Shown here piece after piece: positions 13,120 through 63,137 of a stretch of DNA of 64,000 nucleotides; position 1 is the first letter of the stretch; each line of letters starts with the position of its first letter. The notes beneath the pieces were generated by a model. The model did no database searches and had not been told where the DNA came from. It worked only from the letters and a program-made list of their open reading frames with translations. The stretch comes from Ascidiella aspersa. Its lineage: Eukaryota. A program made the translations under genes and the position numbers. The stretch is taken from assembly GCA_963924565.1 (NCBI GenBank), contig OZ004615.1, positions 7,378,001-7,442,000 of the forward strand, given 5' to 3'.

Positions 13120-16100
13120 ATGGCGTCGGCGCATTCGAAACGCACCAAGCTGTGGTACACGATCCAACCCAAGGAAGAAAGGGACGGTGCTGGCAGCTGC
13201 GAGTATTTAACTCCGATCGGCAACGAACGCGCAAACGGAAGTCCGACCTATCACAAAATCGGTAAGTTTGCAACAGTTAGCGATACCTTTCTCACATACT
13301 CTGGCTGAAGTGCTGTGAATTATGCAACTGTATTTACGCCTGAAGTAAAAACATCTTATTAAACAAGTGTGTACAATTGTGATCTGGCCCTTTGATTAAG
13401 TCCTTGAGGTACGAGTGTTATTTAATGTTTATTTGACAAAAGTGTTTGGATTAAGTTATGTTTCGAGCATGTATAACCCGACAGAGTTGGGACATAATAC
13501 ACCCTTGAGAATTGACCCTGTTTTCAAAGAGTGTAAATCCTTTCATTCTAACTAAAAAAAATACATGTAAAAAATAACACTACATACAGTCTTTCAACGA
13601 GAGGACAATTAAAAATGTATTTAATTTTAACTTGACTCAAACATATTCATACACATGAATGCAACTGAGATCTGGCCCTTTAGTAGTCGTACTGTTTAAC
13701 GATAACGCCACACATATCATAGTACACTGGGTCTGGGAGCCTTTAGAAAGGGTCAAACCGGAATCAGTTAGTGACAACCTGTGCATACGAAAAGGATGCG
13801 GGCAATGATGCCATGGTTGACTATTCACGTGCTCCCACTTAGGGAACGCGTAAGGCTGCTTTGCATTTAATGCAACCACGAGAACACAATAAACAAGCTG
13901 GTCACACTTCAAAATTGTGGCGTATAAAGTAAAGAGGCAAGCTTATGGATAGCGTGGCCCATTTCTCGTTTTAAAAAGCAGCTTAGTTGGTTGAGCGATG
14001 TCCAGGTATGGATATACCTCACTGCCGGCTATAGTTTATTTTCTGGGTTGGCCTTGCTTGTGTATATTTCAACAGGTGAGACATGACCACCGTGCTATCT
14101 GAACTCCACTAAATCGAAACTAAGACAAACTTTCATTGTAATTTAAAGAGCATACTGTCAGGTCGCTTATAGATTTATTGTACATTCACATAATTTAGCA
14201 TAGCTCGCTTTCAATAAAAGAGCTTACAGCGCAGTAAAAACGGGTCTCGCAAGTAAGGCATGCATTAGTTGACTGTAGTGTTTAATCCAACAGTAGCGTG
14301 ACACTATATAGCACAAGAGCGACTGCGATGGAGATTAGCTGAGTCGAATGTCGGCTAGATTTGCCAGAACGGCCACGAAAGGAAATGAGTATCTAGGTGA
14401 AATATTTAACACTTTACCAGGCGAACACGCTATAATTACAAGCACAAACAGACATGCGTCGTTTCTCTACACTTGCACAAAATCCTTATTGATGATCTGA
14501 TTTCGGTTAGTCCATCGGTACGACTTCTAAAGGGCCAGATCGCAGTTACACACACTTGTGTATGAATATGGTTCAGTGAAGGTGTAACCAACATTTTTTT
14601 AAAGATTCTTTCGTCGAAATTCTGTACGGTGTTATTTCTGTCCGATTATACATACTCGAAACATGACTTAAGTAATCCACAACTTTTATCAAACACATGA
14701 AATAAAACTCGTATCTCAAGAACTTACTCGAATCTTGTATTGGGGTTTAACATTTCACGCCTGGGCGGTAAGAGGTAGTTCGGAACAATTCGCCCTAAAC
14801 TTGGACGAAAACGTTTCAAGGCGTCAAGGACCCCAAACAATTCCCCGAATGCCTCATATCGCCGTCAACTACATCACTTGACAACTTGTAACTGTTTCCT
14901 AATTCTTTAGAATAGGGATGTGTTTAAAAACCTAGCTCTGATTTTTTGGCTCTGTGGACCTATCGCGGACTCGTCACGCGTAGATTTGGTAGATTGACAA
15001 GTTTTTTTTTAATTCAAAAAACGTGGGACCTTACATTTTTGTAGTAGCTCTTTAAGTTAATTAGAAGCACAGCTGTGATACGAATCGACCAATTTAAAAA
15101 AAATAAACGTCAATTGTGACAATAATGCAAATTAAAAATATAAAATATAACAAACTACGACAAATTAGAGATTGCGGGAAAACATTTAATTATAATTACA
15201 GCAATTCTAAGCAATGTCTTTATTCTCAAACATAGAATAAAGATGGTAAAGTTTAATGCCGCTTTTCCAAACTTATTGGTAAACAATTTGATGGTCCCAT
15301 AACCTTCAGAATTTGCTTTTTATCGTGGTTTAAAACAACCTCAACAGTTGGTGAAAAAAGTCCTCCAGTGTTATAGCGGTCGCGGCCTGAAAGAGTTAAA
15401 GTATTTTGGCGCAATTTTTGTCGAAGGTTGAACGATTTTAACCAGTGCGCTCGGCTCTGAAGTGGCCATCAATAGGCACTTGATTTAGGCCTAAAGCTTC
15501 AACACTGAAACTACTGAAATAGGATGCGAGTGCGCGACCAGTTTGCGCCACATTATTGCCAGCTTTTCCCTAATGTAAGTTACATTGCCGACTTCGACAT
15601 TTCGTATGAGTACACACAGTTAAGATAATCTTTCGCTCTTCATACCTCATGCGCAACACACCATAACAAACAACTAGAAGTGGAATAAATCATATTGTTG
15701 AAATGTTTTTAACGTGATAGGTTTTATTGCCTTATTCACATTTCACATTCTCTTTTGTGCAATTTTTTAGTGTTTTAAACGAGTCATTTTTAAATTACCA
15801 GTCAAGTCGTTTATAAAATAACTCAAGTCCCACAGAAATTCATCAAATCCCGATCAAGCCATAATTAGAGCATATCAACTCCAAGTTAAGTCCTTGTCAT
15901 ACAAAATCGAAATTTAAAGTATAAAAATTGTTAAACTTGCCCGATTGTGAGTAATAACTCTTCTAAAAAGTAAAAAAACACAACATATAGCAAGTGAATT
16001 GATTTGTTTCAAGAAGTAAGATAAATAACCCAATTTTATAAAAAATATTAAATGAAAACACCTATACCCTAACCCCAGTCATTTGTCCAAAAGACTTAAG

Positions 16101-19100
16101 TCGAGCCATCTAATTTCAAATGGTGACTTAAGTGCACTCAAGTCAAGTCATTGACTCATCTGTAAATCTTTTATACAGGTGCAATGGAAGCCAAAGACAT
16201 CAAGGAGATTCTGTGTCGGAAAATTGCCTATTTATCAGGTATGCCCTTTATTTTCAAAGTTTACTTGACATCAAGTTTTCCAAAATGTTGTGTCTACTTT
16301 TTCGTTGTTTTTTTGTTTTTTTTTAAGAATTATCACATATACTATGTACAGACCTCATTAATCCGGACCCTGAACAACTGGAATCTCCTTTATCCGACAC
16401 AATATGTAGAAATCGCTTTTCTTCCTATGTCTTCAGCTTTTAAAATTCAAAAAACGGCTCTCTGACTACGATTTAAAAAGTGTTAATAAATGTGGTTCTT
16501 TAACTTTTTGCTGAATACCATATGTGTTCGAGCGGTGACGATCCTCGTGGTAACATAATAGCGAAAAACACTACGCAACCATGTTGTTTTACCTATATTT
16601 AAACTTTCCACTAACGTACAGAAGTTAGAAGTAACGTTTTGCGTTTAAGCGTCGCGATTTAAACTAAGTTTTAACGGTTTCAATTACCCTGTATAAAGGG
16701 CAGGTTTCGATTGGAATACCCTGGGCCTGGGGTTCAAATACACTACTCGGGCTTTGGAATACGTTTGAGGAAATACCGTACTTAATCCGTGAGATTAATT
16801 TTCCTAGTTCGAGAATGGAACCCTGTTAAATCTAATTTAACAAAACAAAGTGTTTCGCATTACCGAGGTCAAGTTGCATATATACATTAAATCAAAACAG
16901 CTTGGATTTGCCACGAATTTAAAAAAAAATCATGACAAATATGTTTATTTCGCCGTTAAAATTTCTTTGAGGGTTTTGTGTGCTGGCTGGCTTCTGGTTA
17001 CGTACGCCGCACACACATCAGTATCCCGCGGTTATTTAGACAAGCACCTGCTGTGGCGCTACAAACAGTCGCGGTCGGATTAGACCGGCGGTTGAAACCG
17101 ATCCTGAGCGCAACAACATCAGCATACCTACTAACGACTGTTCGGAAACTGAAATCGCCGGTAGACAAAGGCGCCCAAGGGTTTAAACGCGGCTACAATC
17201 AGAATCCGGTACAAGCGATTTCCAGATCGCTCGATATAAAGCGGGCCAGTCCTGTTTACATCAATTAGCCCGCAACACAACAAAGGCCAAACGTCGCGCT
17301 GTAACCCGCCTTTGTGCTGTACCCAGGCGGAAAGGACAGGCGAGGGGGTCACATCGTAACCATACCCAACGTCACCGAACGCTACCCTTACACCGAGCAT
17401 GCCATCAGCACCACGCTACGATACCTCTCGTCCATTTTAAGGTAACGTTGCTTTTTCATTTGGCACTCATGCAGTTTAAGTTGCAACCGTATGCTAGTAT
17501 ACGTGATTGCATTGGTTACTACTATACTTGCCAAGGGTCACTGAATCTATTCCCTTGAGCAACCGCCAAATGATCCCTGTACGACGGTGTATTGACCGAA
17601 CTGAACATATTTTCTCCTGCATCAAGGCAAAAAATGTCATTGGTCATAACGCAGAACATAATGTTTTACATTCATTGGTTCTAACTGCTATATGATTTTT
17701 ATCTTTTTTTATCGGGTACTGCTAATTTCAATGCAAGGTTCGGATTTACTGGTTTTTACTTAAATTCAAACAAAATTCTCTTAATAATGTGTGTTTTTTG
17801 TAATGCTAATGCAAAAGACGCTATAATCCCAATTAAACTGTGCTATATTTTGTAGGTGTTATACTTTTTGGTGTAATACTTACACACCTACAAGAAGCAG
17901 TGTTCGGTAACATTACGTTCCTTGTACATTCGATTAGAATATTCACACAATCTATATATGGAATATTCTAAAATCCGTGAAACGTAATTTAGGTATAGGG
18001 TTAAGACGTACAGGTTTTTTTAAGGTTAAGCTTTGGTGACCCCTGTCAATTTTAAGGGACGAAACTATTTTACCTGAGGACGAACTGCTAATTTTCTGCT
18101 GTAGTTAAGGTATAGGAAGAATAGGCTATATTTGAGAAATCGTTTGATAAATTTGAAAGGCCGTTTCGGTTCCTCGTTACACCTTGAAAAACACTGCGTA
18201 CTGGAACCCGTACATGTACTAACTTTTGTTTATTACGAACTTCAGCACACAGAGACCTTTCACAATTCTGCTCGACGCTCGTTGTTCATCATGGAAAGCA
18301 GCCAAGCCCCTTATCAGGATAATGCAGGTGGCTCGTTTTTTTCTTTTGTGATGTATCTAATAATTTTCCGCGTAGTCTTGCTAAAATGTATAAAAAGCAT
18401 ATTCCTTTAAGATTATTAGCAAAGATGTCGATTCGTGACTTATGAGAGCAGTCCATTTTAACTATTTTTGTATGGTACACTATTTTGTATTAGTTCAAAA
18501 CAAGCACATTATGTCAGCCTAAACTAAAATGTGTCCAGATGCCTTTTGACTAATATTATTGCACCCTTTTGTTTGGTAAATGTACGGAAAAATATACCCT
18601 TGCGATATAAAGCATTACTACACCTATATAATTTTGTGTATCTCCATACCATCAATATAGTTTACCAACGTTGGGGTAAAAGCTAATATGCTCGAACGAC
18701 CGCCGAACAATCTTTGTCTCAAGTGTAAACTTTTCTTTCTGGCAAATTTTCGACAATGTAACATTTGAAAGAACAATTTAACAATTGAAACAATGCCTGG
18801 CACCAACAGTATGTTCATTACACGCTTTGCATTAATTTTTCAGTATTGCATGAGAGGCAAGATAGGCATGGTTTGCATCGTCAAGCCGGCAGTGTTCTGG
18901 GAACGGCAGCGCGCCAACTACAAGTTCAAAAAGTTCAAGGACCGCCTCGACTTCCAGGTGACCACAGTGCAGGCTTTAATATGCTATTGCTCTCAGTGCA
19001 ATAACGCTTATTGAATTAGGACGCGTGCGTATTATGAATTATTGAAAACGAAAATGTGGCTTGTCTATGGGGCGTTGCAAAAGAGCTGCGGTACATCGAA

Positions 19101-22100
19101 AACGTGGTATATCAAATAACATCGATATTTTAGGTCAAAGGCCTGAAATTCCTAAACGTTTAGTGTTGGTACACCTGAGAAAAATATACTTTAATAACCA
19201 CTACTTATAGAAACAAAACAATCAGTTATTTCCCAACAACGCATGTATTTACATCCAAATGATGAAGGCCTATGTTAAATGGTTATCTATTGAAAGGCTG
19301 ATATAGCCGCATATTTTGTTCAAACGATTAAAATAAAATTTTAAACACTTTTTTTATTGTAAATTGCGCATGTCTGCAATAGAGGCTTTTGAGTGACTAA
19401 AAATTAAAATACTGATGTTTGTCGAAAACTTCCGGTATATGTTTGAGTGCCATTATGTTTTTAGGCAATTTTTGTTTCTTTGGAGTATTCAATGTGACCA
19501 AGAAACCTCCTGTGTTTGTCCAATCGCCGCAAAATAAATTCGCGTACCCTTTTCAAGTCCCGTTATTGTAAAACAGCAAATTCAATTGCTTTGTGGCTTC
19601 TCTCGTTTATACATTTCATCGCTTACCGACTGTTAAGTAAACATAAACGTACATTGTACCAGTTTACCTGTTACTCCGCGCAATGCTATGAAGGTTCAAG
19701 TTCAAACGATACGTAATATATTTTTAATTATATTCCCTAGTATAATGTTTGTTTGGTTTTACTCAGGGTCTTTAATGGCTCTATTAACAATTTAAATGCT
19801 ATTTGATTGCAGAAAATTAGAAATTGCTTTGAGATGTTTAGATTACGCCTCTCATAAATTTATACTTTCAAATTTTATTTTAACCCAAACTTCAGGAATA
19901 TTATGTTGCTTAGGATGATATTGAACACACTTTTATTTTGGATCCGAACTGAACCCCATATGTTTAACCTAATTTTAAGATCTGGTTGAACTACAAACTT
20001 TTAAAAGTTGGTCCTATTATAATTTTTGTTTGCTAAAGTTATATACGCTTTAAATGTGCCAAGAACTGTTTACACAATGAAAACATTTAGCCCAATGTTT
20101 AAAGCACTCTTTCTCTAATCCGCCCTTAGTTATACAAACGTCCACACCCGGTCCAACTTACGTTTTACATTGTATCGTAAGTTCAGGCAACAACAATATA
20201 TATTTGTTGGAGACGTCTAGGAATATAACAAATTTTTTGTTGCCACCAAAGTAGGTTTTGTTTTAATGCATTGCTGCTGCTCACAAAAAAAAAGTTAGGC
20301 CATTTAACCCATCGTTAAAATACAACACTTGTCGTCGTTTACATTTTCCTGCTAGAAAGATTTGTAGCCAACTGGCTCCACAGCGCCACCGACGACGGTA
20401 ACACAATTCAATTAAAAAACTTATTATACATAGCTAAAAATAGACATGGGCAATTAAAAATAAAAACAATTGACTGACAAAACTTAGTTACTAAAACGTA
20501 GTCGTGTTACCATTTATTAACTTTTGCCAAAAAAAACGTAAACATTTAACTCTCTGTGCATTTGGTGGTGCGCTTGATGCTGTTTTATCCGCTTCACGGT
20601 ATAAAACTTTCGTTTAATTCATTTAAACTATAGCTCTCATCTTCAATCTAAAACGTTACAATTGCATTCGTTTCCCCGTGCGAGCGTTTAAAGTTATATC
20701 TCTTATCCACTCATTTTGAGGATTTTTTGGGCCGCCTTCAACCTGTAAGTTTTAGTGGCGCTGATGACACACAAAATGCTTGACCTTCGTACAACTGCGT
20801 TTCACAAGGTCGAATAGGAGTTTAATAGTTTGCATAATATATTCCCTATTTTACCGCATTGTAAAACGTATAGATGCTAAATATCCGCATTGTATGTTGT
20901 ATGCACAATTCCGTCGACAACGATTTAAACTATGTATGAATTCATTACGCCAAACTTCGCAGAAGTGCCCTTTTCATGAAAAATGATATATTGTTTTCAC
21001 AACGTGAAAGTGAAAAAGTGTATAATTCTTAATAAACGTTTTTTGTATGCATAAGAAACCGCTATACCAGTAGAATTTAGTGTAAATTACAATGGATTCG
21101 CTTGCTCTCTTGTTTGACTTAAAAATAGAAAAATTAGAAATTTCAAGTAACTTTTACTAGTCCACAGGACCGACAGGAGTAGGGCTTGAGCTACGGAAAA
21201 ATGCCAAAAAATTCGTAAAATGACATGGTTGACATTTGTTAAAACATTTTTGGTACCATTTTAAGCCAATCTAGAGGGCGTGGCCGCAAATTTTTTTTTT
21301 TTGAAGCTTTTACATGTTTCGTTTCGCTCAACAAAAAATAAAAGGAAGATTTTGCTCTACTAATTATCGTGCTATATCTAAACCTTACCATCCTCCATAA
21401 CCCTTTACCCATCTCTCCCACCTTTTCAGACGCACCTCGTCTCCGTGGAGAAAATGACCCGCTTCGTGAACCCAGATCAGCTGACTGGAGAGTTCGGTGG
21501 ATCGCTCTGCTACGACCACCACCAGTGGATCCGGAACAGGATCAACTTCGAGAAGTACGTCACCGACGCCGAGGAGAAGATGGACTTCATCCAGACGGTC
21601 GGGAGCGTTGCTAGGCGTAACCAGGTGAGAGGCGAGCGACGGTCGCCCTTTGGTTTATTTAAAAGTTTAGACGGGCAATTTAAACAGATCAATATAGTTG
21701 GTTCGTCGGATAATGTCGTCATTTTAATATAGGGTGGAGTTAATCTTGTTGCGTTTTAGTGGAACTGACCATCCATAATAAGAAAACCGAATAATGCATA
21801 TTAACGACATTTTACTAAGATGTTTTTGTACACCGGATTAAAACCAAATTTAAATATAAATAAATTCAAGCCAATTTCGAGCGACAAAAGAGAGCCCAAG
21901 ACATAGAGCATTCGAATGAACTGCCAATCAAAAAATACATCATTTTATTTTACCTTACCTGGTCTTCTTTCAAATTGAATTTCAATAACCTTGCCTTTCA
22001 ACGTGTAAAAAAACAGGAAATCCTAAACAAGTTGTCAGAACAGTGACACATATCGACAGGAAAAAACCCTATCCAAGATGGCTTTTTACTGAATAAATTG

Positions 22101-46300: not shown

Positions 46301-49300
46301 ACTACTGCTCTACGGTGGTAGGTATAATCATTATTCTAGTGTCTGAGTTATTAGCTCTTTTTCTACTCTATTATTAGTTATCGAAATTAGACAGCTGTCA
46401 GTCCTTTTCCGTTTAGTCTTTTATAATGTCTGTTGAAACCTATTAAAACCATTCACTGCAACCCTTTTCCACACATCGCTTTCTGCCGAAAGACAAAAAA
46501 AATTGTACTGCCGTTTACAAATAGGCATCATTTTGGGCTTTGTGGCATGTTAATCATTAGTTCAATACGCGTATGATACCGTAATGTATAAGGTAACATA
46601 CTTCCACATTTCGTAACATCTTCATACGTCACGCAGGCCGTTTCTTCCCTGGAGGAGTTGGAGCGGAGATTGCGGAGCGGCAAGTTCTCCCTTGTTCCGG
46701 AGGAGGCCGAAGAGCAATACTCCAAGTTTACTTCGAGCATCCAAGCCGCCGCCGACACTCCTCTCGATAAAGCAGAAGCCATTCTGAGCTCAACGTAAGG
46801 ACGCGTCATTAAAACCTATGATGTATATAGGGTAGTAGCACTGTACCAGTACTGTAGTTACTCAACTTTTATAAAGCAAATTTGAACAATATTCAGCGAC
46901 CAGTTAACGAGTCTTGCGTAAACTGACGTTCTCCACGGAGGAGTGCAATAGTCACTATAGTTGTACTTAACTGGTTTAACCTAACGTTTTGATTAACTTA
47001 GTCATTTGTTTAAATTTGCTGTCATTTACCATGTCGATTTTTTCTGTAATTTTGGAAACATATATTATATGACGAATCATATAGATCTGATAAAATATTG
47101 GTATGTTTTTTTTTTGAAAAAACCCGCTATGTCACGTTAACTGCGCCATGTTGTTATATTTTTAAAATCTAGATCAACGTGTTCAACCTGCGGCCGTCGA
47201 TGAATAGTTTTTTCGGCCGTTAACACATATTATAATAAGCATGTTTTGGCGGCCGTGCCCGTGCTGGCATGCGTTAATGGTTGATATGCTAAATGCAGAT
47301 TAGGATTTTTTACGACTGATGCAAAAATAGGTCAGTCTAGCAAATGTATAACAATCTGAATGAGGATGTCACATAAGAAGATAAAACAAGAATTGATTAT
47401 ATATAATTAACGGCTGAGCAGGCATGTGTTGTGCTAGTTGTGAGTGGGATTATGGCAAAACTGTCGGACAGATTGAGTGGTAGTTATAAAAAGTCTTGTT
47501 TAAACGAATAAGTTGTGTGAGTGTTTCTAAACTGTTATTAAGCAAATGAAGAGAAAATATATTGAAGATTAAATGACCATCAGGCACAAAAAACCTGTAT
47601 TTCGGTAATAGGCCAAAAACCCCAAAAATTAAATTATAAACCACAGACAGTAGGCACTTGGTCCCAGGTCAACAAGCTTTGTACCACCCTAAAACTGCAT
47701 GCGCGCCGTTTCGACAAACAGCCGCTCAGCTGCGTCACGTGTCTCATTTAAAAACCCATTAGTTAAACCCAATAAACGCATTTTTTTCGCGCTTCACGCG
47801 ATTATAATATATTTCAGTTCTATATTTTTGCACGAGATCATTATTGAACAATTAGTATATGAAGAATAACTTTTCTATGACGTCACGTGACGTCATATCT
47901 AAAAAAAAAGGTTGGACACCCCTGAGCTAGATGAACCGATATGTCTTTTTTACGAATGCTTTTGTCTCATTGCCACAACTAACTTAAGTAAAAACCAACT
48001 GGACAGAAAACCCGATTTTTGAATAACAACTATCACTAAAAGCATTTAACAATAAACTGGAGCGTTTTTTGTATAATACATATTTACCGAATATAAGTTA
48101 GATTTGAACACCATTATATACCTTATTATTTATTCCCTTATTATTTTACATTTATCACGCAGAGAGCACTTTAAACCTCCTTTGTTATTTTCCAGAAGCG
48201 AAGAGGAGCAAACGGCAGCTGAGGGAATCGTTTTCTCCCGAGATGCGATCATCCGGAGAAAAGAAGAACTTCTGGGCATTATTCGGAGGCATCGTCAGGA
48301 CTCTTCCCGCATCAACGACATGATGAACCTCTTCTTCAAGAATTGTGAACAGGTATTGGTAAACCGATTTGGTAGAGAATTGTACACACTATACTTTTAT
48401 TTTGTTGTGTATATTTTTTATATATAGAGCGCTATCCAAATATTCGAAGAAGATTATTATGCTTAGCATATCTAAATCAGACCTGGGGAACCTACGGTCC
48501 AAGTAATTTAACCCGGTGGTTATTTTTCAAAAACCTTTTGGAAAAAAATTAAATCCTTTTTTTTGATTTTGGACTATTTTATTAAAATTTACATTTGTAA
48601 GGCATCCTTGCCAATTCCTACTCTTACCAGCTTGTCAAAACAAGAATAATTACAGGTTTATTTAAAAAAATCACACTTTATACTATATTTTAGATTTATT
48701 TTAGATTCACTTGTTGTGTATTAGATACACTTTTCAAAAAGAATTACCCTCCCCTGGTCTAAATAGTTTCGTCCAACGAAATAAATTTAGTATATTTTTT
48801 CCTCGCACTGGTATTTTTTACACTCAGGGGCTTTATGTACATAATATAAAGGTTTGTAAGATGCACTTCGTTTCAATGCACCCCAGTTTGTATTTCATGC
48901 TAACTCTCTCATTTGCAGCTCAAACTCTGGACTACCGAAGTGGCAGAGGGAATGCTTTCCGCCAACGGTGCTATGGGAGATAACGAGGAAACAGCGTCGC
49001 AGCTGGTTCTCTGGCACAACATGCTCGCTAAAGACGTTCAGGTTAATACGTGTTTGCATTGTCATCTTGTTTATCTTTAATTTGCGAGCATTTTTTTCAA
49101 TTGTGCTTGTAAATTGCGGCCATGAATTTAAATGACAGCAAACACTCTTCAGAATATTTTGGCATATTTATCAAAGTCCGTCATTTAGATTTTCTTTGAA
49201 TTGTAGAGATGATGCAATATGTCAAATTTATTTTCTTATGCATCTAGTAAAATGGAGGACTTTGAAATTTTTAGATAATACTATGAAGAATCTTGAAAAT

Positions 49301-52300
49301 GAGAATGATTAAAGAAATTAGTTGAAATGTTGAAAATAAATATTCGAAACAAAATATGCTACGTAGAAATTTATTAAAATGAATATGGGGTTTGATACTT
49401 AGTCTCCTTCTAACAACAGCCTCCAGGAATTATGCTCGAAAATCTGGCGACTTTTTGCCGAAGATATTATTCCTGGTCTACATTTCTCTTGCTTACATAA
49501 TTTGACAAAACTACCCGCGTTTTGCCGCAGGCGAAATCTTGTGACCTTGAGATTCTCGTGAAAACGGCCAATGACCTTTTGGACGTCGGGGTCAGCAAGC
49601 CGGTCGAGGTCAGAGACCGGGCCAACGAGGTCAGGATGTCGTGGGCCACCATCAATAGAAAGATTGCGCAACGGGTCGCCTTGGCCAACAGCTTCGTGGA
49701 TTTTATGAACGAATTTGAGAAGGTATTTTTGTGCAACGAAACGGAAAATATCGCCTTTAAAGATCGAATTATCAAATATCGATTAATAAAATGCATATGC
49801 TGGTTAGTAAAAATTGTTTTACGCTATAGCTGAACGTAGCATGCTTTAAAATAATTTAAACACATAATCTGTCGAAGTACGTGGTTGTTATTTATTCGGC
49901 CAAATATTTAACATTAACTTATCGATTGGTTTATTATATATTTCAACTCGTTTATTAAACACAAAACCTGATATTTCCTAAAACTGTGACATCTCTACTA
50001 GGGGTTTCTCATATCATAAAATAGGCGCAAACCAAAGTTAGTTCAATACTATGTATATAAAATAGTAACGTTTCCTATTCTAGACGCTTTGATTGGATGT
50101 GGTTTACATTCATTGCTTTAAACGCTATTCACTCGACCCCCTTTTGTGAAACGAGTTTCACGCGGATCTAATAGCAGGGTTAAAAACGATAATGGTTTAT
50201 TTTGTGAGAAGACAAGCAATATAATTTCCCTACAAAAGTATTGCGTGTCGTTCCTATATAGAACAGTTGCTTAACTGTTTAGTGGAGTCAAATCGGAGAA
50301 GCATTTAAACGGGCCTAATTGGCCCCCTTTTTAAATTATAAATTTATGACCAGCTATCGAATTAATGCACAATCACAACCTGAATGGCCTAATAAATTGC
50401 ATGAAACTGCTTTTCTATCTTGCAACGTTTAAAGATAGCTTCTCATATCATTGTCAAATTTAAACTGATATATATAGTTGTCAAATCACCCTTCAGGGGT
50501 AATTACCCAAAGATTAAAGAACCACTGCTATAGAGATATTAGCGGTTTACCCAGTACTTCAACTCAAAACCCGTGTCCTACAGATTAAGGTCGAAATCCA
50601 GCTTACACACGCCAACGTGTCAAGCCACAAGCAACGCAAGCTGAGCGAGGTGGCTCAAAAGGATCTGCGCGGACTGGAGGAGTCGGTCAAACTCGTACAT
50701 GACAAATGTCTCCAGCTGAACGAAAAGGGAAGCTCGACCAGCGCTAAACTGAAGGAGGGGATTGCTGGTGAGTTGTGTAGCCAACGTAATTCGAAAATAA
50801 AAATCATTGCTGGCAGTTTCTTAACTAGATTAGGTAGTGAAATTATTTCGTAATGCTAGAACTATTGCATATGGATTTTAAAGAGGTAAAAAATATGGAT
50901 TTATAGATCCAATAAGACTGCAGACTTTTTTATACAACTGTAGGCTTACCACTATAAAACAGATCCACTATAAAGCAGTCTGTGGGGGTTCCTTTAGTAT
51001 TTTGCATTTATTCGTTTTATTGCTTATCCACGATGTGTTAAACTATAGTATAGATCAGAGTTAGATCAATTACATTAATTCAGTTTATATCCAAATACAA
51101 TTACTCCCTTAAATATTTCAAATACATTACAAATACAATTACATTAAAATCTGTAATTAATTGCATCAATTGCAATTTTCGGCATTGAAACGTCAATGTT
51201 CTCAATATCAAGTAATAAGCCAATTTTTTGCAAATTTTAATTACAATTGCAAAGAATGAAAATGCCTCAATTATATTGCAATTACAACTACATTAAAACC
51301 TGGAATTAATGACATCAATTACAAATTACAATTGATCAAACTCTTATATATATAGTATATAAAAAACGGGTATTTTGATATAAAAATGATGCATAACTTG
51401 CGCTTTTGCGTTTACCTTATTGCGTCAAAAACTGAGAACGGCCCTGATCTGCAGAGGACGAGTTCGACACCAGCGGCGCCACCGAGTCGATAGGTGAGCG
51501 CCTTCAGGAAATACATCGGCTCAAGGGCGAGATGTCAGACGTGTGGCTGTCGTGGAGGTACAAGTCGGGCGTGAGTCGGGAAACAGACGCGCAGTGGAAA
51601 CAGATCGAGAAGAACATCAACCGGGTAAGTTTGGTTTGACCAACTTTCCAGGCAAAGAGCCGCTTCGGCAGCGGTGTTGTTTGTAAAGAAAGGTATACTG
51701 TTAGCATATAAATTTTCTGTGATCAACATCCCTAACAATTAATTGTGACAACTTTTATAAGTCATTAAAAACAAGGACTATGACATATTGGTAATGTAGT
51801 CCTTTTTATCATTTTTTTTTTTAATTTGTTTTCTTTTATCATTTCTTCGTTTTTTATTTTCGCTGAATTAAAGATGATTTTAGTGAAATGAATCTTATAC
51901 TTAGTATACATTTTCGATATATAAAGTAAAATTAGACAAAACGCAATACTATTTAGGAATTTTATACGGCAAATGTCTTCCTACACTTCAAGTCATAATG
52001 TTTGTTGCAAATTGATTGGAGGTTTTAGTTTGACATATAAGAATAGCAAAGCCCATAGAAATGCTACATATACTTATATATAGGCTTTGATATAGATTCT
52101 TGTATCAAATATGCAGCTTATGGGATCTCTGGAAAACGTGGAGCAGTCGGTTTTCATCAACGACGAAATCGAATTCGGAGAGGACTTTGAGAGAAATCAG
52201 GAACTGACGCGAGCGCTTGAAATCAAACAGACTCTCCTGCAATCTGTACACGCCGAGATCGAAAAAACAGTTACGGTGGGAACTTGGTTAAAATATATTG

Positions 52301-55300
52301 CCAGCTTAATCATAATATTAAAAGTACTTCGGGTTGTCGTTACAACCATGTTAATATGTATTTGTTATTACTCGTATACAAGCATGGTTCACTGTTTAAT
52401 ATATACTGCGATAAAGTGAGCATTACAATGAATTTAAAAATCAATCTATAAATTAACAAAAAAATATTTTATTTTTATTTTTAGGGTTTTGAAAACGCAT
52501 ATTGTAAAGTTGTATTGTATTAGTGCATAAGAAAAGACAGACATCTTTCTATGCAAATTAGGCTTAAAATACTTTATATTTTTCTTGTACAAATATTACG
52601 TTATTAAAATGTTAAAAACGGTTTAAATAATCAGCCTTGCAGCCGTTAGTTTTGTTGGGTTTGCTCTTTTTTACGACTAGTGTGAATCAACAGTCAACAC
52701 ACATTACTCTACAGATCTATTATACAGTGTTGTAAAAAAAACTTTAGTCACTTTTTTTCAGATGACTCGACTTGACTTAAGTCATTTTGGAAAAAAATGA
52801 CTTTGACTTGACCAAGTCTTTCGAACAAATGACTTGAATTAAAAAGAGGTGTTTTCTTAAAGCATTTTTTTTATAAAATGAGGTTATTATATCCTTATAT
52901 TTCTACATAAAACAATTTTATTGCTATATGTTGCTTTTTTGTTACCATTTGGTTGTTTTATTGCTCGTAATCGAGCTAGTGTACCAATTTTTATGGTTTA
53001 ACGTTTGCTTTTTATGACAAGGACTTAACTTAAGATTAACTTGCTATAATTTTGACTTGACTGGGACTTAACTTGTGATTTATTGAAAAAGTCTTGACTT
53101 AGACTTAAGTTATTTTACGAATGCCTTGACTGCGACTTAAGTCATTTTAAAAAACTTGACTTATAATTTGTTGTAAAAGTCTTGACTTGGACCTAAGTTA
53201 TTTTACGAATGACTTGACTGAGACTTAAGTCATTTTGAAAAACTTGACTTGCAATTAATTGAAACGTCTTGACTTGGACTTAAGTTATTTTATGAATGAC
53301 TTGACTGAGACTTAAGTCATTTTGAAACAAAAAACAAATTTACAACACTGTTATAATAATACTGATACGTTATGACATTAGCACGGCGAGCTCTTCGGCT
53401 TGCGTTCGCCCGGCAAAGAAAAGAGCGCGACGGAAGAGACAGGAGCAGAAGAGGACGAAGAAGATACGCAGTATCCGGTAAGGAGGAGGATTAGGGCTCT
53501 TCTGGTCCGTCACCAGATGCTCAGCACCAGGATGAAGCATTACAAGAGCGCACTGAAGGCGGCAGCGACGTGCCACGAAAACGTTGTTAAGGTTTGGCTG
53601 CATTGCTTACAGTACGTTTGAATTTTTTTGCCTTTGGATTTTTATATGAGCGTTGCGATGTTGTTGGATGCTGGTTTGACACAAGTAATTACAGTCTTTA
53701 TTTCAGAAGGTCCTTCAATGGTATTACGCTATTTGATGTATATAGAGTAGTTATTTTTAAATTGAAGTCCGGCGATCCTTGGGGCTTCGCGCAAAAAGTT
53801 GAACTTAAATAACCCTGTAGCGCATTTTGTCCAATGCCGGCACGTTTTACGAGAGAATGTTACTATTGCAACTTAACGCAGTTAAGGTAATTGCAAACTC
53901 TGCACCTGACATTACACGTTTGTCGCTCGCCCAATAACGCTTGATTGACCCTTGCTGATTAGGCAAAGGTTATCGCGAAAAACGTTGTAAAGGTTTGGAT
54001 GCAATGCTTTCAGTACGTTTACATTGATTTTTTGGCCTTTGGATTATGATATAAGCGTTGCGATGTTATTTGATGCTGGTCTGACACAAGTTATTACAGT
54101 CTTTATTTCAGAAGGTCCTTCGATAGTATTACGCGATTTGATGTATATAGAGTAGTTATTGTCAAATTGAAGTCTGGCGATCCCTGGGGCTCCGCGCAAA
54201 AAGTTGAACCTAAGTAACCCTGTAGCGCATTTTGTCCAATGCCGGCACGTTTTACGAAAGAATGTTACTATTGCGACTTAACACAATTAAGGAAATTGAT
54301 AACTCTGCACCTGGCGTTAGACATTCGTCGCTCGCCGAATAACGCTGGATTGACACTTGCTGATTAGGCAAACGTTAACGCGAAAAACGTTATTAAGGTT
54401 TGGTTACAATGCTTTTAGTACGTTTCAATCGAAATATTTTTTGGCCTTTGCATTGTAATATAAGCGTTGCGATGTCATTGCTTGCTGGTCTGACACAAGT
54501 AATTACAGTTAATATTCCAAATTTTCGTTTGATAATATTGACTGCAAAGGTACGCGTTTTGATGTATATAGAGTAGTTATTGTCAAATTGGGGTCTGACG
54601 ATCCCTGGGGCTCCTCGCAACATACTTTAAATTCATTGAATGGTAAATTACATTAACAAGAGTATATCCTCCTTATTGCAGTTTTATGATTATAAATTGC
54701 TTGTTTAAAAATGCGGTAAGTGGTTTGTACCGGATTTAATCTTGATTTGAATCTAATAAAGGAAGCATAAGGGACCGGACTAATGAATTTAAAAAACACT
54801 GATAAAGCCTGCATATAGATAAAGTAATAGTTATGTGGCTCGAAATTTTTTTTGATTTGGACACATGTATTTTTGTCCTTTTCTGATTGTTTTTATTCGA
54901 TCCACAATTCGGACAATAATAAATTGCTGAAAATGTGATAACAAGGTATGTGATATTTGAAACCTAGATTGCTGCATGTAAGCTACATAATTTTGAAAAA
55001 TATTTTTAAAATCGTGGCTATTAACATATTTTGTGTAAATGGTGGAATTTTGGAGTTACTGTCATAAAAGATATCTATAGGTGGCACATATCTGCTGGAG
55101 CCCATAAGTTTACAACTGCTTAAAAACTATATAAAACCACAACAAAAATAACAAGTAGAATGTATTGCACTTTCAGCTACGTCAGGCCATTAAAGAATCC
55201 GAGAAAGAGCTAATGAGCAAAGACTCACTGCGTGACGTCATCGACATGCCGAGCAGCCCTAAGAAGGAGGCCTTCGTCACGGTCCTGCTTCGCAGTCACG

Positions 55301-58300
55301 CCCGACTGCGCACGCAAGTCGATGACGTCATGAACGCGGTGACGTCGGGAAACTTCGAGGTGCACCAGATCATCAACCGGCACGAGTTGGGACAGGTTGG
55401 TGTAATTATTATGTAAAGTTCAAAATAAAGTTTTTAGTTGGAACGGTGTGCATTCAAAGAAAATATATTTTAAATATTTTAGATGCTCTTTACTATTTTA
55501 TAGTAGTGCGTTAAATATATCAATATACAAATATATCTATTACAATGAGTACTCACGTTATTTTTATTCGAGTAGATTTATTTTGCGACAATTTGTAGAC
55601 CAACATTTCAATAACGTAGAAAAAATAACACTTTTACATGTTTAGACGTATTGTGGGATTGTGTTTAATTTTCATTTTTACTGTTTCTGCATGTTGATAT
55701 ATATGCCTAACCAAGTACCAACACGTAAAACCTATTGAAAAATGGAAATGTGCCCTGCTAGTGTCCAACGTACCATGCTGATGGAAAGGCCGACACTCCG
55801 GCATGAAAATAACATTACCTCGTCAGTTTATATCAAAAAAGCAGCGCATTTACATTTTTATTCTCCAGCCCCGTCTCGGGCAAGGACGCAAAACACTTGA
55901 CGAGATCACGATGGAGGTGTCGGTGTTTTACGCGCATTGGAAGAAACTCTGGCAGAACTACCAGGAAAAGCTGGAAGGCCAACAACTCAGCGCCTGGTTC
56001 ACGCAGAGCTACAGAACGGTGAGTCTCGCCTGAAAGTGGTTTGTAGGATTGCTGTGTGCATTAGATACTTAAAAAATCGATTCTCGCCAGGTACATCATG
56101 CACGGAAATGTAATGCAGCTTGCTAATGAATCTCAAAGCCAAAAAGGTGGAATAAATCGACATCATCTTGATAAAGGCGTTTCGATACGTTCTTGTATCA
56201 CCAGTCACATTAACTGATGATACAAGAACCTATTCAAACGTCTTTATCAAGATGATGTCGATTTACTCGACGTTTTGGCTTTGCCGATTTTCTATATTTT
56301 GGACAATAAGTGCCGTGATCCAATGCGATACTGTATGACTTCATTACTAAGCTCACGCAAGCAAAATATAGATAAAATAAAAACGTTCGAAAGTATTTTT
56401 TAGACAATTGGCTCATTAGCGTAAATAAATTTATTTACCTCCATTTATTAACCTACTAGTTTCTGATAAATTTCGTTTCCAAGGTAAAAAATGTTTCATT
56501 AGGTCGCGCATCATGGCTGAAATTCCTATAATAATTTGGAATCGAATCGGCACCGATACCACCCTAGTATCGTACGAGTACCGATACTTTAACTTGGAAT
56601 CGAGTATCGGCTCAGATCCGATATTATCGGATTGCGCAATCGCATGTATGCGACAGGACAAGACGATTTTCTTGCTCAGTTTTGACATTAATGTTGATAT
56701 ATTTCATTAAGCATTTAGGTCGTATTTTTGCCATGCTACCAAAAAAGAGACGTTGTTTTATGCATTTCCGATAAGTTTTTTATAAACGAATACGAGTCTG
56801 CAATGAATTGAGAGAATACTGAAAATCAATCGTTTACTTGATATTTTTTATAACTTGAAATCCACTTTGCTGACCCAAAATTGTATTTTGAGTCACGTTT
56901 TTATTTTTTTAACATTGACTTGAATTGATTTCAACTTATACTGCGAGAGCTGGATCACTTAATCAAGTGTTTAACTTCTCGATTCTTGGCGCAGCACTGC
57001 GAAGCTATTAATCGCTTCGAGGGAAGGCTGGCTAGGCTGGACGACAAGATTTCGACTTGCAAGGTCAAGAAGCGAGCTGTCGCCTTACAAGAGGAAGCCA
57101 ACGAGATCTTGATAGAAATACAGGTGATGTAACAACAGTAGGAAGTTTAGCTGGCCAAGAACATTGCTTGTATAATTCCAATCAGGACAAACTACGATTA
57201 ATTAGCAGAATGGCTGTAGTAACGCATTTTTACCCTATCAAACTTGTCACCAACATTAATGCGGACTTTGGTTTAAAAAATCATAAATAAAATGGTTAAA
57301 AAATCTTGAAGGAAAGCGTGAGCTGTTCGTTTTATTTTAATTATTCTTTTCCATTTTATAAAGTGAGTTTGCAGCAGCTATTGGTACTATCGAACACTAT
57401 TTTAAAAATCAGGGTGTTTCTTTTTTTCCCATTTCTACTTTGACCTGACGAAGCACGGTTGTGCGAAAGCTTTCAAGATTCCAATACAGTTTGTCGTTAT
57501 TTAGAGTCATCTGGTTACCCTATCCAGAGTTAGACCAATAAAAAAGATTTCTTTTTTTAAAAAGACTCAGTACCTGGTCGCGGCGCACTAAAGGCTACGT
57601 CTAAGAAAAAACTCCACCTTTCTGACTTTCATTTTTTGATTCGTTTTTTTCTCGCAGGAGGCGAAACTGGAGTGGGAGGAGTTCGCGCGCTCGTGCAAGA
57701 GACGACTGAAGAGCGACAACCCGAGGTTCGAGCGCACCCAGAAGGAGATTGCGGAGGCGCAGATGAAGATAGGAGCGGCGGAGGAAAAAGCGAGCAAGTC
57801 CGCCTCCTCCGCTCACACCATGAGCAAGTTCTACGCGATAACGGAAGAGGTTTGATGATTTTAATTGCTGTGTTTTGTTATTAAACATTGAATGACTGCG
57901 TGGGTTGAGTGGACAGTTCGGAGCTTGTATATCTTTTTTAACATCTTTATAAAATGTCTGACATTATAATACAAGGATTGCTAGACTATTCTGCTGTTGC
58001 CACATTAGGAGTTCAACGTATGTTTTGCAAGGGTTAAGAAGATTTCAAATATTAAACATTTAGTACAACATTAACCTTATATCCACATTATATTTATAAG
58101 ACCCTAATGAAAACTCAAACATTTATAGACATACGAAAACAACGTTGATCTAGCCCTTTAGAACTACTGTAGATTCCCTTTAACATAAAGTCATGCGTAC
58201 GTAGAGGTAGTTGCAATTTTGCCACTGGATAGAGTTTTCTAGTCGATTTTTCTTGCTTAAAACCTTGGTTGATCAAACTGGGTTAGCCCTCTGAAGCCCT

Positions 58301-61300
58301 TCACTATGTCTTTCTGCCAATAACGAACTATAATTTGAATAACCAAAATGTCCCAGACACATCGACATTTTCGATAAAAATATTTAAAAGGTTCTGTCAA
58401 AAGTGTTCGTACGAATTATTGTTAGATTTAAAAACTCACTGAAAAATTGTGAACTTCATACCTGTAGCAAAGCAATTATTCTCACACTATTCCTAATTTT
58501 AAATTGATTTTGTTTATTTTTAGTGCGAATCGTGGAATCGTGAATTGCAAAAGTTGGTGGAGACGATTCGACACAAGTCATCACTCATCAAGTACGTTAT
58601 ACAAGAAAAATCTGGGTTATTATAGTTATACAGGAAGAACGTGGATTTTTATAGTTATACGGAAAAATCTGGGTTATTATCGAACTGCAACTTGACGCAC
58701 CAACATATTTAAATCTTTCTTCTGTTGATGCGTCTTAATTTTCCTAAAAGCATTACCACAAATGATTTTTTTGAATCTTTGCTCTTGTAGCAGCACGCCC
58801 TTTGAAAAGATTAAAAAAAAAACATTCACACAAAACATTAAGCACGAGGCTTGACAGTTAAAGTAAAAGAGATCACCGAAACATCAACATTCGCCACCTA
58901 CGACCCGCAGTCTCCGGGTTTCAAAAGGAAACAGCAGCAACTCTCAACATTTGTTCATCGCTATATTGCAGGACTTCAGACGAAGTGGACGACCTCGTGA
59001 GGCAGCTTGGCAAGAACGTTCTCGAACGTTTGGAGGAACAGCGAGATCGCACGCACAAGTTCGCCTCCATCATCGTCGAGGCCGAGCAAATTGCGGAACG
59101 GGGATGCGGCGAGGCGATTGCAGTGGACGTTCCGCCTTTCCGCAAAATGATGAAGCGAAAACAAAGCGATATCGTCGAGTCGGTCAGCAACCTCAGGTAT
59201 ATCATTTTAACTGTCTCTGGCACGCACAACGCCATTGTAAGGTGCTCCACGCTCTGACCTGGCGAGGTTGTTCATCAGGGGATATCTATTCCAGGGACCT
59301 TGCATCCACATATTTTAACGCGATTAGTATGGGCCAAACGAATTTTGGACTAGATTCACCTCAAGTAAATTAGGGGCAACCAAAAGTCCATTTTAAGGTG
59401 TTCCTCTTTCTGTCCTGATCGATGTGGGATTATTGTGAACCATACAGTTCGAAAGAGTGCTCACTGCTCACTCACAAATACAATTTTACAGTCACAGTAG
59501 CCGGGCAATACACTGAAGCAATCAAGTGAGCGATAAATCAGAAAGACTTAGTGTTGTTATGCCCTGTATATTTGCAGATAAAAACTTGACTAACCAAATG
59601 TGATAAAATGTTTAATTTAAAAAATGGCCACCAAACTAATGGTCAGAGTATTCGTGTCGCAGGCCTGAAACTTAAGCCTTTCACGGGCCAAATATTTTTG
59701 GTCTGTCGGCCCAATTTGGCCCTTGGGCCATATGTTACACACCCCTGATTAAAACTTATTGCTGTTAGCCTAGCATGTCCATGCGGGGCGATATGAAAGC
59801 AAGCTTAAGTATTGCTTCAACCGTCAACCAGCAGGTGGGCACTGCTAAAGAGAAACTGCAAGTAAAATTTGGCTTTCACAAAACCTTCCAGCAAAAGCAA
59901 AATGACTGTCGCCTGTGCAGTATGCAATGTGTTTTTGTTGTATGTCTTCGGACTAGTTTTACTAGGGTTTTTGTTTCCATAGATACTGATGATGCCATCG
60001 TTGGCGAAATATAGATATATTCTCTAACATTTACTAAAATGTCTGACTATACCACTGTTACTTATCAGGAGTTGAAGTTGACATTTGTTTGATAGGGTCA
60101 GGGCGATTTCAAACATTTCACATGCGACATCTCAAAAACATGTATCAATCGTACATTCGATAAAAGCCAACAACAAACTATACTTTAGCGTTTACAGCAG
60201 GCATTTTATGTCATACCGTCCCTTTTCTTCAGGTCAGAGGTGGATCACTTGCATTCGCGCCTGGAAGAGGTTAAAAGCACTTACAGCGAGCCCCAGTCGC
60301 CCATAGCAACCCACAGCGCCCCACCAACCCACTTACCGGAACCAGAGACGCCCCGGATGGTCCCCGGCACCCACCTCATCCCGTTCAGGGAGCCCGAACC
60401 CCCTCAAACCCCCACCCTTGTACCCCCGCCGGCCTTTCCCGAGCGCAAGTTCGAGCCCTACGATATGTCGGTGCTCCTGGATGAAAATCTCAAAAAGAGC
60501 AGCGGGGAGGAAGAGTCGGACTCCGCTCCTCTTCCGAAAAAGATCGAGAAAAAGGAGCTCTTTACACCACCTCCGCCGCCTTCTCTCCCTAGATATGATG
60601 AAGGTAAACCTTGTTTTCTGTTTTCTATGTTTTACACGTGTTTTCGTAAGAAACGCGATGGAACTGTAAAAGATTGTAATAAGAAGTCTTTTTTCATTGT
60701 ATGTTTGTGTTTGGGTTATTGCGATAATGATCACGCCACAAAAAATATGAAAATGACATATTTTTTAACTTATTATAAAATAAATACCAAACATAGCAAA
60801 GCTCGCAACGCTTTTGTGTAAAAACATTAAATATGAAGATTTTAACTTTTACCCTTGGCTATGTTAGTTTGTTTTATGTATGGGATGGCGTAATCCAATA
60901 TCGTAAGATAATGGTGTTTGGACGTTCATATTGTTAGTTACACACAAATGTCTTGTCTTTTTTCATGCGTAAATTAAAGCAGTGGATTTACATTTCTTCC
61001 CAGCTCCTCTTACGCGCACGGTTGGACGTCCATCTGCGAGTCCTCTCCTCGCGTCCACCGACACATCCTCATCCTCCTTCTCCGTGTCCTCCGCATCGGA
61101 AGAGTACCTGGTGGAGTCTGTGACCTCAGACAGCGACGAGAATAGAGTTGTGACAGGTCGGTGGTGAGCAACGCGTATAAGACAAAATACACACACACTT
61201 GAAAGTATTTCCCTGGTTTTAAAGTTTCCTTTTTTAAGCCATTTTTGTTTGAATTAAGCGTTCTGTTATGAAAGAATAGGTCAGTGTTTCTTAAACTTTT

Positions 61301-63137
61301 TTTGTTTTGTTCACTCCTATCATCGATCTCCAGATTTCATTCACCCTTGTCTAATGATATGATAAAACTATCTCGTTTATATATAACAGCACAAAATGAT
61401 TTAGGTTGTTTCGATTTTTGTTAAGATCAACTCAAGCTAGGTTTTACCACTGAAAATATACAATCTCTCGATTCCAGAAATATAAATCTACAAAAGCACA
61501 AAACACAGTTTTTTTTTTTGTATTGAACACTTAGTGCAAACCAACTTCACTATTACAATAAGCAAAAAACACCAAAAAACAACAATTCAGTAGTTGATTT
61601 ACTGCAGAGCTATCATGCATTTCTGACGGTTCACCCTTATTCACCCCCTTTGATTGGTTCACCCCTGCAAAAATTTTGTTCACCCTGGGGTGAACCATTC
61701 ACCAGTTTAAGAAACCTTGGAATAGGTTACAATCCGCAATATAGCATTTTGCCTGGTGTTTCTTTAGAACTATTGTTTCTATGCTTTATATACTCGTAGA
61801 GTACTGGGTTTTACTAAATTCGAAAATCTCAAGCATTTAACAGTTATTTGAGTATGTGACAGTTGTGACACTGTATCCTGACGGTGCTTGTAGCTTCTTA
61901 CATGGCGAATAATCCACGTTTCTAACGTTTACATTTTTATACTAAATGTCAAACGAATTAAAATAAAACCCCCATAGTTAAAGTAGCATGATTGTCACTA
62001 TAAGTATGACCGAAACGTAACTTGGTAAACAAGCCAATAACAAATAACAGTGCAACTAATGATGATGCAAGTACGTATCGAAACGTATTTACCAAGATGA
62101 TGTCAATTTAGTCGACATTTTGGGTTTTAAGAATCATTAATTAATTATCAAGCTACATTACAGATTCGGGCATAGTGTACAGTGTTGTAAACAAGTCATT
62201 TTGAAATGACTTAAGTCCCAGTCAAGTTATTTGCAAAATAACTTAAGTCCAAGTCAAGTCTTTGAATAAATAACAAGTCAAGTCCCAGTCCAAGTCATCA
62301 GTTGCGCAAGTTAAGTCCCAGTCAAGTCATAATTAGAGCAAGTCATGTCCTTGTCATAAAAATAAAACGTTAAACTATTATAATTTTTAAACTCGTATGA
62401 TTATGAACAATAACTGAACTAAAAAATAAGGAAAACGGATAATATAGCAGGCAATTTGTTTTTTGTGCAAAAAATTGGACAAATAGCTCAATTTTATTAA
62501 AAAAATACTTAAAAAAATGCTTTATTTCAACCCAAGTCATTTGTTCAAAAGACTTAAGTCAAGTCAAGTCATTTGTCCGAAAGACTTAAGTCAAGTCAAG
62601 TTATTTTGCCCAAATGACTTAAGTCAAGTCAAGTTATTTAGAAACAATGACTTAAAAAGTGCACTTAAGTCAAGTCATTGACTTAAGTCATTACAACACT
62701 GATAGTGTACAAAAGTAATTTTATTTAGCAGAAAATCCCACTCCAAAACCAACACTATATTTATAAAGATCATAAATCTAGGGTTCTTAACAGTTGTTTT
62801 TTGTAAAGAGTGGCTTTGTCTCAGATGTTCTTGCGTCTATCTTAGCAAATTACCTGAACTCATGCTATTTTTCATAGCACGAAAAGTTGACAGGACCGCG
62901 TCAGACCGTAGCGACCGCGACACTTCCACGTCGTCGGTGACCACTAACAGCAGGGGACAGACGCCGCCGCCCAAGCCGCCGCGACACGCGACACAACATC
63001 GGCGCAGCAGCGACAAGCGACAGCGCAGACAGGAGCGTCAGCGCTTCTGGGAAAGGGACCTCGACCAGTACGCGGCAGCTTGGCTGGCAGAACGTGAGGG
63101 GAATGCCCCTAAAGAGGAAGCGCAAGGTTGTGAGAAG
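40316..63137 (+). CDS. CCDC141: CCDC141-like spectrin-repeat/coiled-coil module followed by a Pro/Ser-rich region; probably 3'-incomplete
   Basis: Exons 40316-40438, 41617-41874, 42864-43067, 44373-44522, 45140-45259, 45799-45984, 46637-46794, 48196-48352, 48919-49041, 49531-49722, 50584-50767, 51455-51624, 52117-52275, 53382-53591, 55177-55395, 55869-56018, 56995-57123, 57658-57849, 58524-58591, 58972-59196, 60233-60603, 61004-61156, 62878-(63126 or 63137), phase-consistent. WVRMKLVQCSPSAFEIGRNLKEAQKLQEQHEQLLGKIK and AMSHSLCDLWQDLNELLARRHSLLNTSVRFY align to recalled human CCDC141 (WVQLQLAESQPNLLEIG...[40 protein letters not shown]). Confidence 0.85.
41982..42268. mobile_element. hAT-type MITE, same family as 27011-27356
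   Basis: Ends aagggatttctaaac / gtttaagaacccctg; TSD agttaagg / aattaagg (7/8). Confidence 0.75.
47170..47930. mobile_element. Degenerate hAT-type MITE
   Basis: Left caacgtgttcaacctgcggcc, right ggttggacacccctg, with ctagat-like sequence at both ends; boundaries approximate. Confidence 0.5.
51056..51345. mobile_element. MITE with AATTAC internal repeats
   Basis: TIR agagttagatcaatt / aattgatcaaactct; many caattac(a) units. Confidence 0.65.
52725..53350. mobile_element. hAT-type MITE of the GACTTAAGTC family with internal ~70-bp tandem triplication
   Basis: TIR CAGTGTTGTAA / TTACAACACTG; dense GACTT/AAGTC repeats; three ~70-bp units at ~53090-53325; TSD ctattata / ttataata (6/8). Confidence 0.85.
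53575..54620 (+). repeat. ~400-bp tandem repeat, ~2.6 copies, starting inside exon 53382-53591
   Basis: Units start at ~53575, ~53976 and ~54381 with cgaaaa(a)cgtt(g/a)t(t/a)aaggtttgg and remain colinear. Confidence 0.9.
61282..61719. mobile_element. hAT-type MITE with TTCACCC subterminal repeats
   Basis: Ends cagtgtttcttaaac / gtttaagaaaccttg; flanked by gaataggt on both sides. Confidence 0.7.
62180..62701. mobile_element. hAT-type MITE of the GACTTAAGTC family, opposite orientation to 52725-53350
   Basis: TIR CAGTGTTGTAA / TTACAACACTG; perfect 8-bp TSD ATAGTGTA. Confidence 0.92.

Follow-up and report, generated by a model that had tools for sequence, protein, structure and literature searches.

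A single ancestral gene uniting SESTD1, CCDC141 and TTN, termed 'connectitin' and regarded as a paralogue of TRIO/KALRN, has already been proposed (Hanashima et al., 2025; PMC12198301). In that proposal cnidarians and placozoans have the three parts as one connected gene, which has 'diversified into three genes in bilaterians', and the internal promoters of kalirin match the three start sites (PMC12198301). The idea recurs in a later paper, which also mentions joint CCDC141–TTN transcripts in mammals (PMC12657953); the term itself was found in no paper beyond these two. In the first of them Ciona serves only for synteny, crinoids are not mentioned, and no fused forms from tunicates, crinoids or annelids are discussed (PMC12198301). 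Here we describe a stretch of 64,000 nucleotides (nt) from the sea squirt Ascidiella aspersa, hereafter the window (assembly GCA_963924565.1, 308.6 Mb; contig OZ004615.1, here C9, positions 7378001-7442000, + strand), which, to judge from sequence comparison and exon phase, likely holds the counterparts of SESTD1 and CCDC141, immediately 5' of titin, as one splice-compatible unit. An earlier reading of these letters without database searches (the sequence-only reading) had taken the locus for a survivor of a fused ancestral gene and had suspected that such an ancestor might already be in the literature, as indeed it is. What the connectitin papers lack is any living bilaterian in which the SESTD1–CCDC141 junction has stayed open or fused. 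The boundary described below is real, conserved and splice-compatible, and constitutes a modest extension of the published idea.

The window resembles connectitin in its order of parts (Sec14, spectrin repeats, more spectrin repeats and an immunoglobulin (Ig)-rich titin, all on one strand), and in the same relation to Trio/kalirin, as a paralogue with internal starts, but it is splice-compatible at the first junction, SESTD1 to CCDC141, only; a direct join to titin is out of frame. With the vertebrate genes it shares order and orientation, and an internal ATG exon would yield a CCDC141-only product of ~1,500 amino acids (aa). In vertebrates, however, SESTD1 and CCDC141 are separate adjacent genes upstream of TTN, and the fish SESTD1 protein (P0009) ends without the half of a spectrin helix A that is encoded here. 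An Ig and a transmembrane domain form the C-terminal end of CCDC141 in mammals (PMC12657953), whereas no Ig exon was detected in the window. In Drosophila, zormin and D-titin isoforms are produced from one gene (PMC12198301, PMC12657953), and both CG15822/zormin/sallimus and kalirin recall the arrangement proposed for the window in giving nested products from one locus through internal starts; the Sec14 gene CG15822, however, is described as separate, whereas in the window the Sec14 module appears joined. Certain crinoid and annelid proteins, known as gene models whose names do not reveal fusion, have both module types in one chain and are continuous where the window has its 37751|40316 intron. 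The crinoid proteins differ by a disordered linker of 150-200 aa before the boundary, absent from the window, and the annelid model by its lack of a Sec14 domain and its six Ig domains.

A splice-compatible boundary

The region between the two modules contains the following features.

37574-37751, + strand: last SESTD1-like exon, acceptor ttttag, free of stops, ending in phase 0 (GAG) before GTTGGT
37752-37775, + strand: donor GTTGGT and read-through, seven codons and then TAG at 37773-37775
38790-39033, + strand: candidate polyadenylation hexamers AATAAA (38790) and ATTAAA (39028), the only canonical ones from the read-through stop to the start of the ATG exon
39265-39816, + strand: candidate alternative first coding exon, opening with ATG, 184 codons, phase 0, perfect donor GTAAGT
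40316-40438, + strand: shared acceptor exon, 123 nt, 41 codons, acceptor tcgcag|TCG (40314-40315), phase 0

The sequence-only reading had claimed a stop-free last SESTD1-like exon with a phase-0 GTTGGT donor, a phase-0 acceptor exon at 40316, reuse of the same donor elsewhere and a helix-A character for WVEGINE|STDW, and these claims held. The first two can be read directly at 37574-37751 and 40316, the end of the latter exon now being established as 40438; the identical hexamer follows 55395; and at the protein join the fused relatives are continuous and the Pfam Spectrin model spans the point in crinoids. Exon 40316-40438, which starts three codons before a helix-A Trp, is the first CCDC141-like exon common to a fused and a CCDC141-only reading of the locus. 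The last ~10 residues of exon 37574-37751 make up the opening half of a spectrin helix A. In the crinoids the Pfam Spectrin model opens 10 residues before the intron point (residues 871-975 in P0020 and 915-1019 in P0112), and, since the relatives are continuous there, the tail of the 'SESTD1' exon is the first half of the next repeat's helix A. The module does not, therefore, end after a third spectrin repeat as a SESTD1 would; its last exon opens a fourth, and the stop is only intronic.

The 13 residues before the boundary were also scored with a small end-anchored profile built from four other lineages. Among the 1722 open 13-mers that stand before a GT on the + strand, the window tail comes 9th (top 0.5%), and of the eight that equal or exceed it the majority are other predicted exon ends of the same gene; on the - strand just 2 of 1796 reach its score (0.1%). 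The 37751 donor is mid-range for the gene, 22nd of 47 under a generic matrix, and GTT donors make up 8 of the 47 in the chain. All four haplotype differences in exon 37574-37751 (37613, 37631, 37649 and 37707) are silent when read in the SESTD1 frame.

The position of the boundary intron recurs within the gene. In the gene-model chain a phase-0 intron lies precisely three codons 5' of a helix-A Trp at six junctions, and four of the six Trp-bearing exons are exactly 123 nt long.

26904|30543, + strand: recurrent junction, next exon opening VHEW
33290|33904, + strand: recurrent junction, next exon opening AIEW
37751|40316, + strand: recurrent junction, next exon opening STDW
44522|45140, + strand: recurrent junction, next exon opening IVDW
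48352|48919, + strand: recurrent junction, next exon opening LKLW
57849|58524, + strand: recurrent junction, next exon opening CESW

Because the six share one intron position, the construction of the 37751|40316 join matches that of the ordinary junctions between repeats on either side of it.

Relatives at the boundary

A phmmer search with exon 21430-21624 against 1.84 billion representative proteins returned 109 matches, the named ones including SESTD1 of fish, lamprey and primate, kalirins, an acorn-worm SESTD1-like protein (P0060, 888 aa) and amphioxus SESTD1 (P0080, 1103 aa); the feather-star protein P0020, described below, was among them too. Similarity to SESTD1-named proteins covers both the Sec14 and the spectrin parts of the first module and is collinear, the tblastn matches of the fish (P0009), acorn-worm and amphioxus proteins falling in order at 17311, 18259, 18835, 21424, 30534, 33871 and 35038.

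Fused proteins were recovered from two feather stars and an annelid. The protein of Anneissia japonica (P0020, 1569 aa; RefSeq XP_033111497.1), named 'triple functional domain protein-like', and its homologue in Antedon mediterranea (P0112, 2141 aa) each have CRAL_TRIO_2, Spectrin_SESTD1, Spectrin, DUF7799 and Spectrin_7 in a single chain. In tblastn, the window exons that P0020 matches belong to both modules and come in order; they include 40316-40438 (by residues 878-925; E 4.5e-6, 40% identity) and 41758-41871. P0112 matches eight exons, all collinear, between 17314 and 49752; within the CCDC141-like module the crinoid matches lie, again collinear, at 40307, 41758, 44388 and 49528. The protein of Owenia fusiformis (P0119, 2458 aa, partial) resembles the SESTD1 repeats of P0112 over residues 197-588 (44% identity) and its CCDC141-type part over residues 637-1749, with Spectrin_SESTD1 (132 bits) followed by DUF7799, Spectrin_7 and the Ig domains. 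All three are continuous at the window's intron, reading FEAQIDE-STEWVR in the crinoids and QQLFDE-SHEWIR in the annelid, where the window has WVEGINE|STDWVR. Residues 1-196 of P0119 consist of a Met and a disordered stretch in place of the Sec14 domain, a start which suggests that the locus commonly uses alternative first exons of disordered sequence.

The annotated SESTD1 models of amphioxus (P0080, ..HREMKQ) and acorn worm (P0060, ..EQSINE) end at the homologous point and carry short tails, VS.. and VG.. respectively; the window's read-through tail opens VG, and is Val-first in the same way. Such tails may represent a GT donor read as a codon, three of three being unlikely by chance (an estimated ~0.07 cubed). 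This suggests that the amphioxus and acorn-worm models were cut short at an unspliced donor, and the comparison as a whole suggests that the first junction was never fully split in several bilaterian lines, namely the feather stars, the annelid and probably this chordate. If so, the fission of SESTD1 and CCDC141 moves to the vertebrate stem, and the sea squirt becomes a tractable chordate in which fused and split products can be compared.

The label 'CCDC141-like' reflects similarity to the crinoid and annelid proteins with DUF7799 and Spectrin_7 only, no CCDC141-named protein having been among those retrieved, and the N-terminal CCDC141 motif assigned to the ATG exon in the sequence-only reading is a putative one. 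The module does occupy the position of CCDC141, between SESTD1 and titin on one strand.

Possible products and alternative readings

The architecture of the locus very probably reflects a retained connected state. A transcript spliced from 37751 to 40316 is probable, and the chances that fusion and an internal start operate together are about even; we infer both the use of the join and the use of the start. Splicing from 37751 to 40316 would restore an ordinary spectrin repeat by uniting helix-A halves from two exons, and the fused product would comprise a Sec14 domain and roughly nine repeats in ~2,300 aa, a layout like that of Trio/kalirin and of the crinoid and annelid proteins. With the ATG exon as alternative first coding exon the CCDC141-only protein of ~1,500 aa would result, and, were the donor at 37751 left unspliced, a SESTD1-only protein would terminate after seven further codons.

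It is also conceivable, and in our view rather unlikely, that the window holds two separate genes in conserved order, a SESTD1-like one that stops at 37773-37775 and a CCDC141-like one that starts at the ATG exon, the boundary being a relic of fission. Several observations fit this reading or weigh against a fused transcript. The TAG lies only seven codons into the read-through, with AATAAA 1 kb beyond it (38790) and ATTAAA at 39028; the 37751 donor carries T at +3; the amphioxus and acorn-worm models end likewise; and seven haplotype differences in the 249 nt 3' of the donor (37752-38000) give no sign of constraint right after it. Pairwise local alignment of the last exon reaches significance with the annelid tail alone (26/2000 shuffles) and with neither the crinoid nor the acorn-worm tails, and a word-indexed protein search with this exon gave no candidate; the case for the boundary is one of position and pattern, not of high identity. 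The crinoid models, moreover, are automatic predictions whose chaining could reflect homology to Trio.

RNA adds little to either side. The interval 36500-42100 was compared with raw reads from a single RNA run of this species (X3) and with two DNA runs, and in the ~6% of X3 that was read (7.8 million reads) no read fell on any exon of this interval and none spanned the fusion. The 31 RNA reads that were placed there, 90-95% alike, all lie on the repeats at 37306-37338 and 42022-42084. The junction count of 37751 to 40316 versus 39816 to 40316 in this run is uninformative, neither for nor against fusion. Short high-copy repeats occur at 36500-36686 and at the two positions just given, with a DNA word depth of up to ~33,000 versus ~100 elsewhere.

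Set against two separate genes is the requirement that an exon with no stop, ending in a useless half-helix at a phase-matched donor, persist not only in a fast-evolving lineage but also in amphioxus and the acorn worm, at a boundary that is continuous protein in three other species. Codon usage argues in the same direction: the tail before 37751 is coding-like (+0.43 per codon), whereas the read-through, of seven codons only, is non-coding-like (-0.78 per codon).

An obligatorily fused gene, as in the crinoid models, would leave the ATG exon as a chance frame or an untranslated feature and would allow for no CCDC141-only isoform; we consider this improbable. The crinoid proteins do without such an exon, no homologue of it was found among the retrieved proteins, and its codon-usage score of 0.10 is weakly coding-like, within the minus-strand range and no better than the best minus-strand frames; the last two points also weigh against an internal start. 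Yet no open frame in the window, on either strand, is longer than that of the ATG exon (223 codons; P ~1.5e-5 under local composition). The exon runs up to a perfect GTAAGT and ends there in the only phase compatible with 40316, with an in-frame stop 11 codons 5' of the ATG and a purine at -3. Across 38793-39835, moreover, 1,043 nt around the exon show zero differences in either of two haplotype contigs, where the overall rate predicts ~9 and the flanks have 22. The exon ends in phase 0 at 39816, and, as the sequence-only reading had it, both 37751 and 39816 fit the acceptor at 40316. No nearby AG lets 37751 enter the ATG exon in frame, so that it can only be a first coding exon. Its open frame, its splice fit and its lack of polymorphism form the whole basis for regarding it as probably genuine in that role. 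The polymorphism-free stretch takes in the exon and ~470 nt upstream, a possible promoter or 5' untranslated region (UTR).

A more elaborate reading, which we hold to be a long shot, is that one primary transcript has three outcomes, cis-splicing giving the fused product, intronic polyadenylation giving SESTD1 and spliced-leader trans-splicing before 39265 giving CCDC141. It draws on an acceptor a few bases before the ATG (an acceptor-like AG at 39250-39251, 13 nt upstream of 39265), which is found at the SESTD1-like and titin starts as well. Were it true, the tunicate would show gene fission caught midway, with the new 5' end provided by trans-splicing. The start codons of the SESTD1-like module (13120), the ATG exon (39265) and titin (76090) each stand 5-13 nt after a pyrimidine tract and AG, at 13113-13122 and 39250-39267 of the window and at 76078-76092 in coordinates extended past its end. 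An AG at so short a distance often arises by chance; these sites could be spliced-leader trans-splice acceptors or the ends of a 5'-UTR intron.

The notion of a transposon in the boundary intron is rejected by the single-copy status of 37760-39260.

Module layout and gene model

The two modules and their clearest exons are as follows.

13120-37751, + strand: SESTD1-like module, ~23 exons in the crude chain, collinear in tblastn with SESTD1-named and crinoid proteins
17327-17441, 18246-18327, 18844-18957 and 21430-21624, + strand: Sec14-type exons of the SESTD1-like module
30543-30665, 33146-33290, 33904-34014, 34998-35130, 36694-36821 and 37574-37751, + strand: spectrin-repeat exons of the SESTD1-like module
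40316-63137, + strand: CCDC141-like module, ~22 exons, 1,323 aa, spectrin/coiled-coil repeats and disordered stretches

The exons were chained with a crude, locally assembled model that combines a generic splice matrix with codon usage trained on the clearest exons. The resulting chain has 47 exons, 2508 aa and zero stops; several of its exons are doubtful, the clear exon 30543-30665 is omitted, and a spurious bridge is inserted via the ATG exon. Without the ATG exon and the bridging exon the fused frame comes to ~45 exons and ~2,310 aa (988 to 37751 and 1,323 from 40316). The single open frame of ~2450 aa across 47 exons claimed in the sequence-only reading is thus open as stated, from the Sec14 module into the CCDC141-type repeats and in phase 0 on both sides of 37751|40316 by our local computation, while its size requires the correction just given.

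Pfam models found nothing above threshold in 20 single exons or open frames, the best being a weak Spectrin_SESTD1 match at 42780-43127 (E 0.043). Single exons are too short for CRAL_TRIO_2 and Spectrin_SESTD1, and both domains are present in the homologues that match window exons. The DUF7799 and Spectrin_7 models gave no usable match against the whole genome, these domains being split by introns. Both modules, and exon 40316-40438 with them, are single copy in the genome; a second copy of SESTD1 or CCDC141 elsewhere was rejected by genome search.

The 3' end and titin

The last modelled exon of the CCDC141-like module ends at 63137 in a phase-0 donor-like site, AAG|GTATAC, and not in a stop; reading on, a stop is met six codons in, at 63156-63158. 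The coordinate proposed in the sequence-only reading therefore holds as an exon end and not as a stop. The design parallels that at 37751, a stop-free exon followed by a phase-0 donor-like GT and, shortly into the read-through, a stop.

The Ig-rich parts of P0112, P0118 and P0119 gave no tblastn match in 44,000-64,000 at E<0.01, Pfam found no domain in the 3' open frames, and accordingly no Ig exon that could serve as the C-terminal Ig of CCDC141 was found in the window. The first Ig matches are those of titin, at ~76,070 in extended coordinates; the Ig exons that the proposed inspection of downstream DNA was meant to look for are present, of Z1 type, on the + strand, with the titin ATG at 76,090, ~12.9 kb past 63137. 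The acceptor before this ATG (76,078-76,079) requires phase 2, and 63137 ends in phase 0. Joined directly to the exon with the titin ATG, 63137 would be out of frame and meet a stop after 36 codons, and the rejection concerns this direct join, not a link through intermediate exons. The ancestral giant gene claimed for this locus is accordingly borne out in its first, open junction and not in a direct continuation into titin. Two long open frames of 178 and 227 codons lie on the + strand at 65605-67123 in extended coordinates; they look disordered and match no Pfam family, and could be additional exons of one gene or the other or chance frames.

Relation to Trio and kalirin

An identity with Trio or kalirin is rejected. 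Of the proteins set against the window in the BLAST comparison that the sequence-only reading had called for, SESTD1 is collinear across the first module, and the kalirins (P0096, P0108) match the Sec14 exon only. No RhoGEF-PH follows the spectrin repeats, and a separate Trio-like Sec14 exon is present 1.2 Mb away. The limited match of the kalirins and the existence of that separate exon place the window gene in the SESTD1/CCDC141 lineage, not in that of Trio. That exon, at 6142439-6142600 (-) on C9, and another of Sec14 type at 25034602-25034709 (-) on contig C1 have 44% and 53% identity to the window's and probably belong to the Trio and DBS/MCF2 genes. A Trio-like Sec14 exon on the chromosome of titin is an arrangement reported for amphioxus too.

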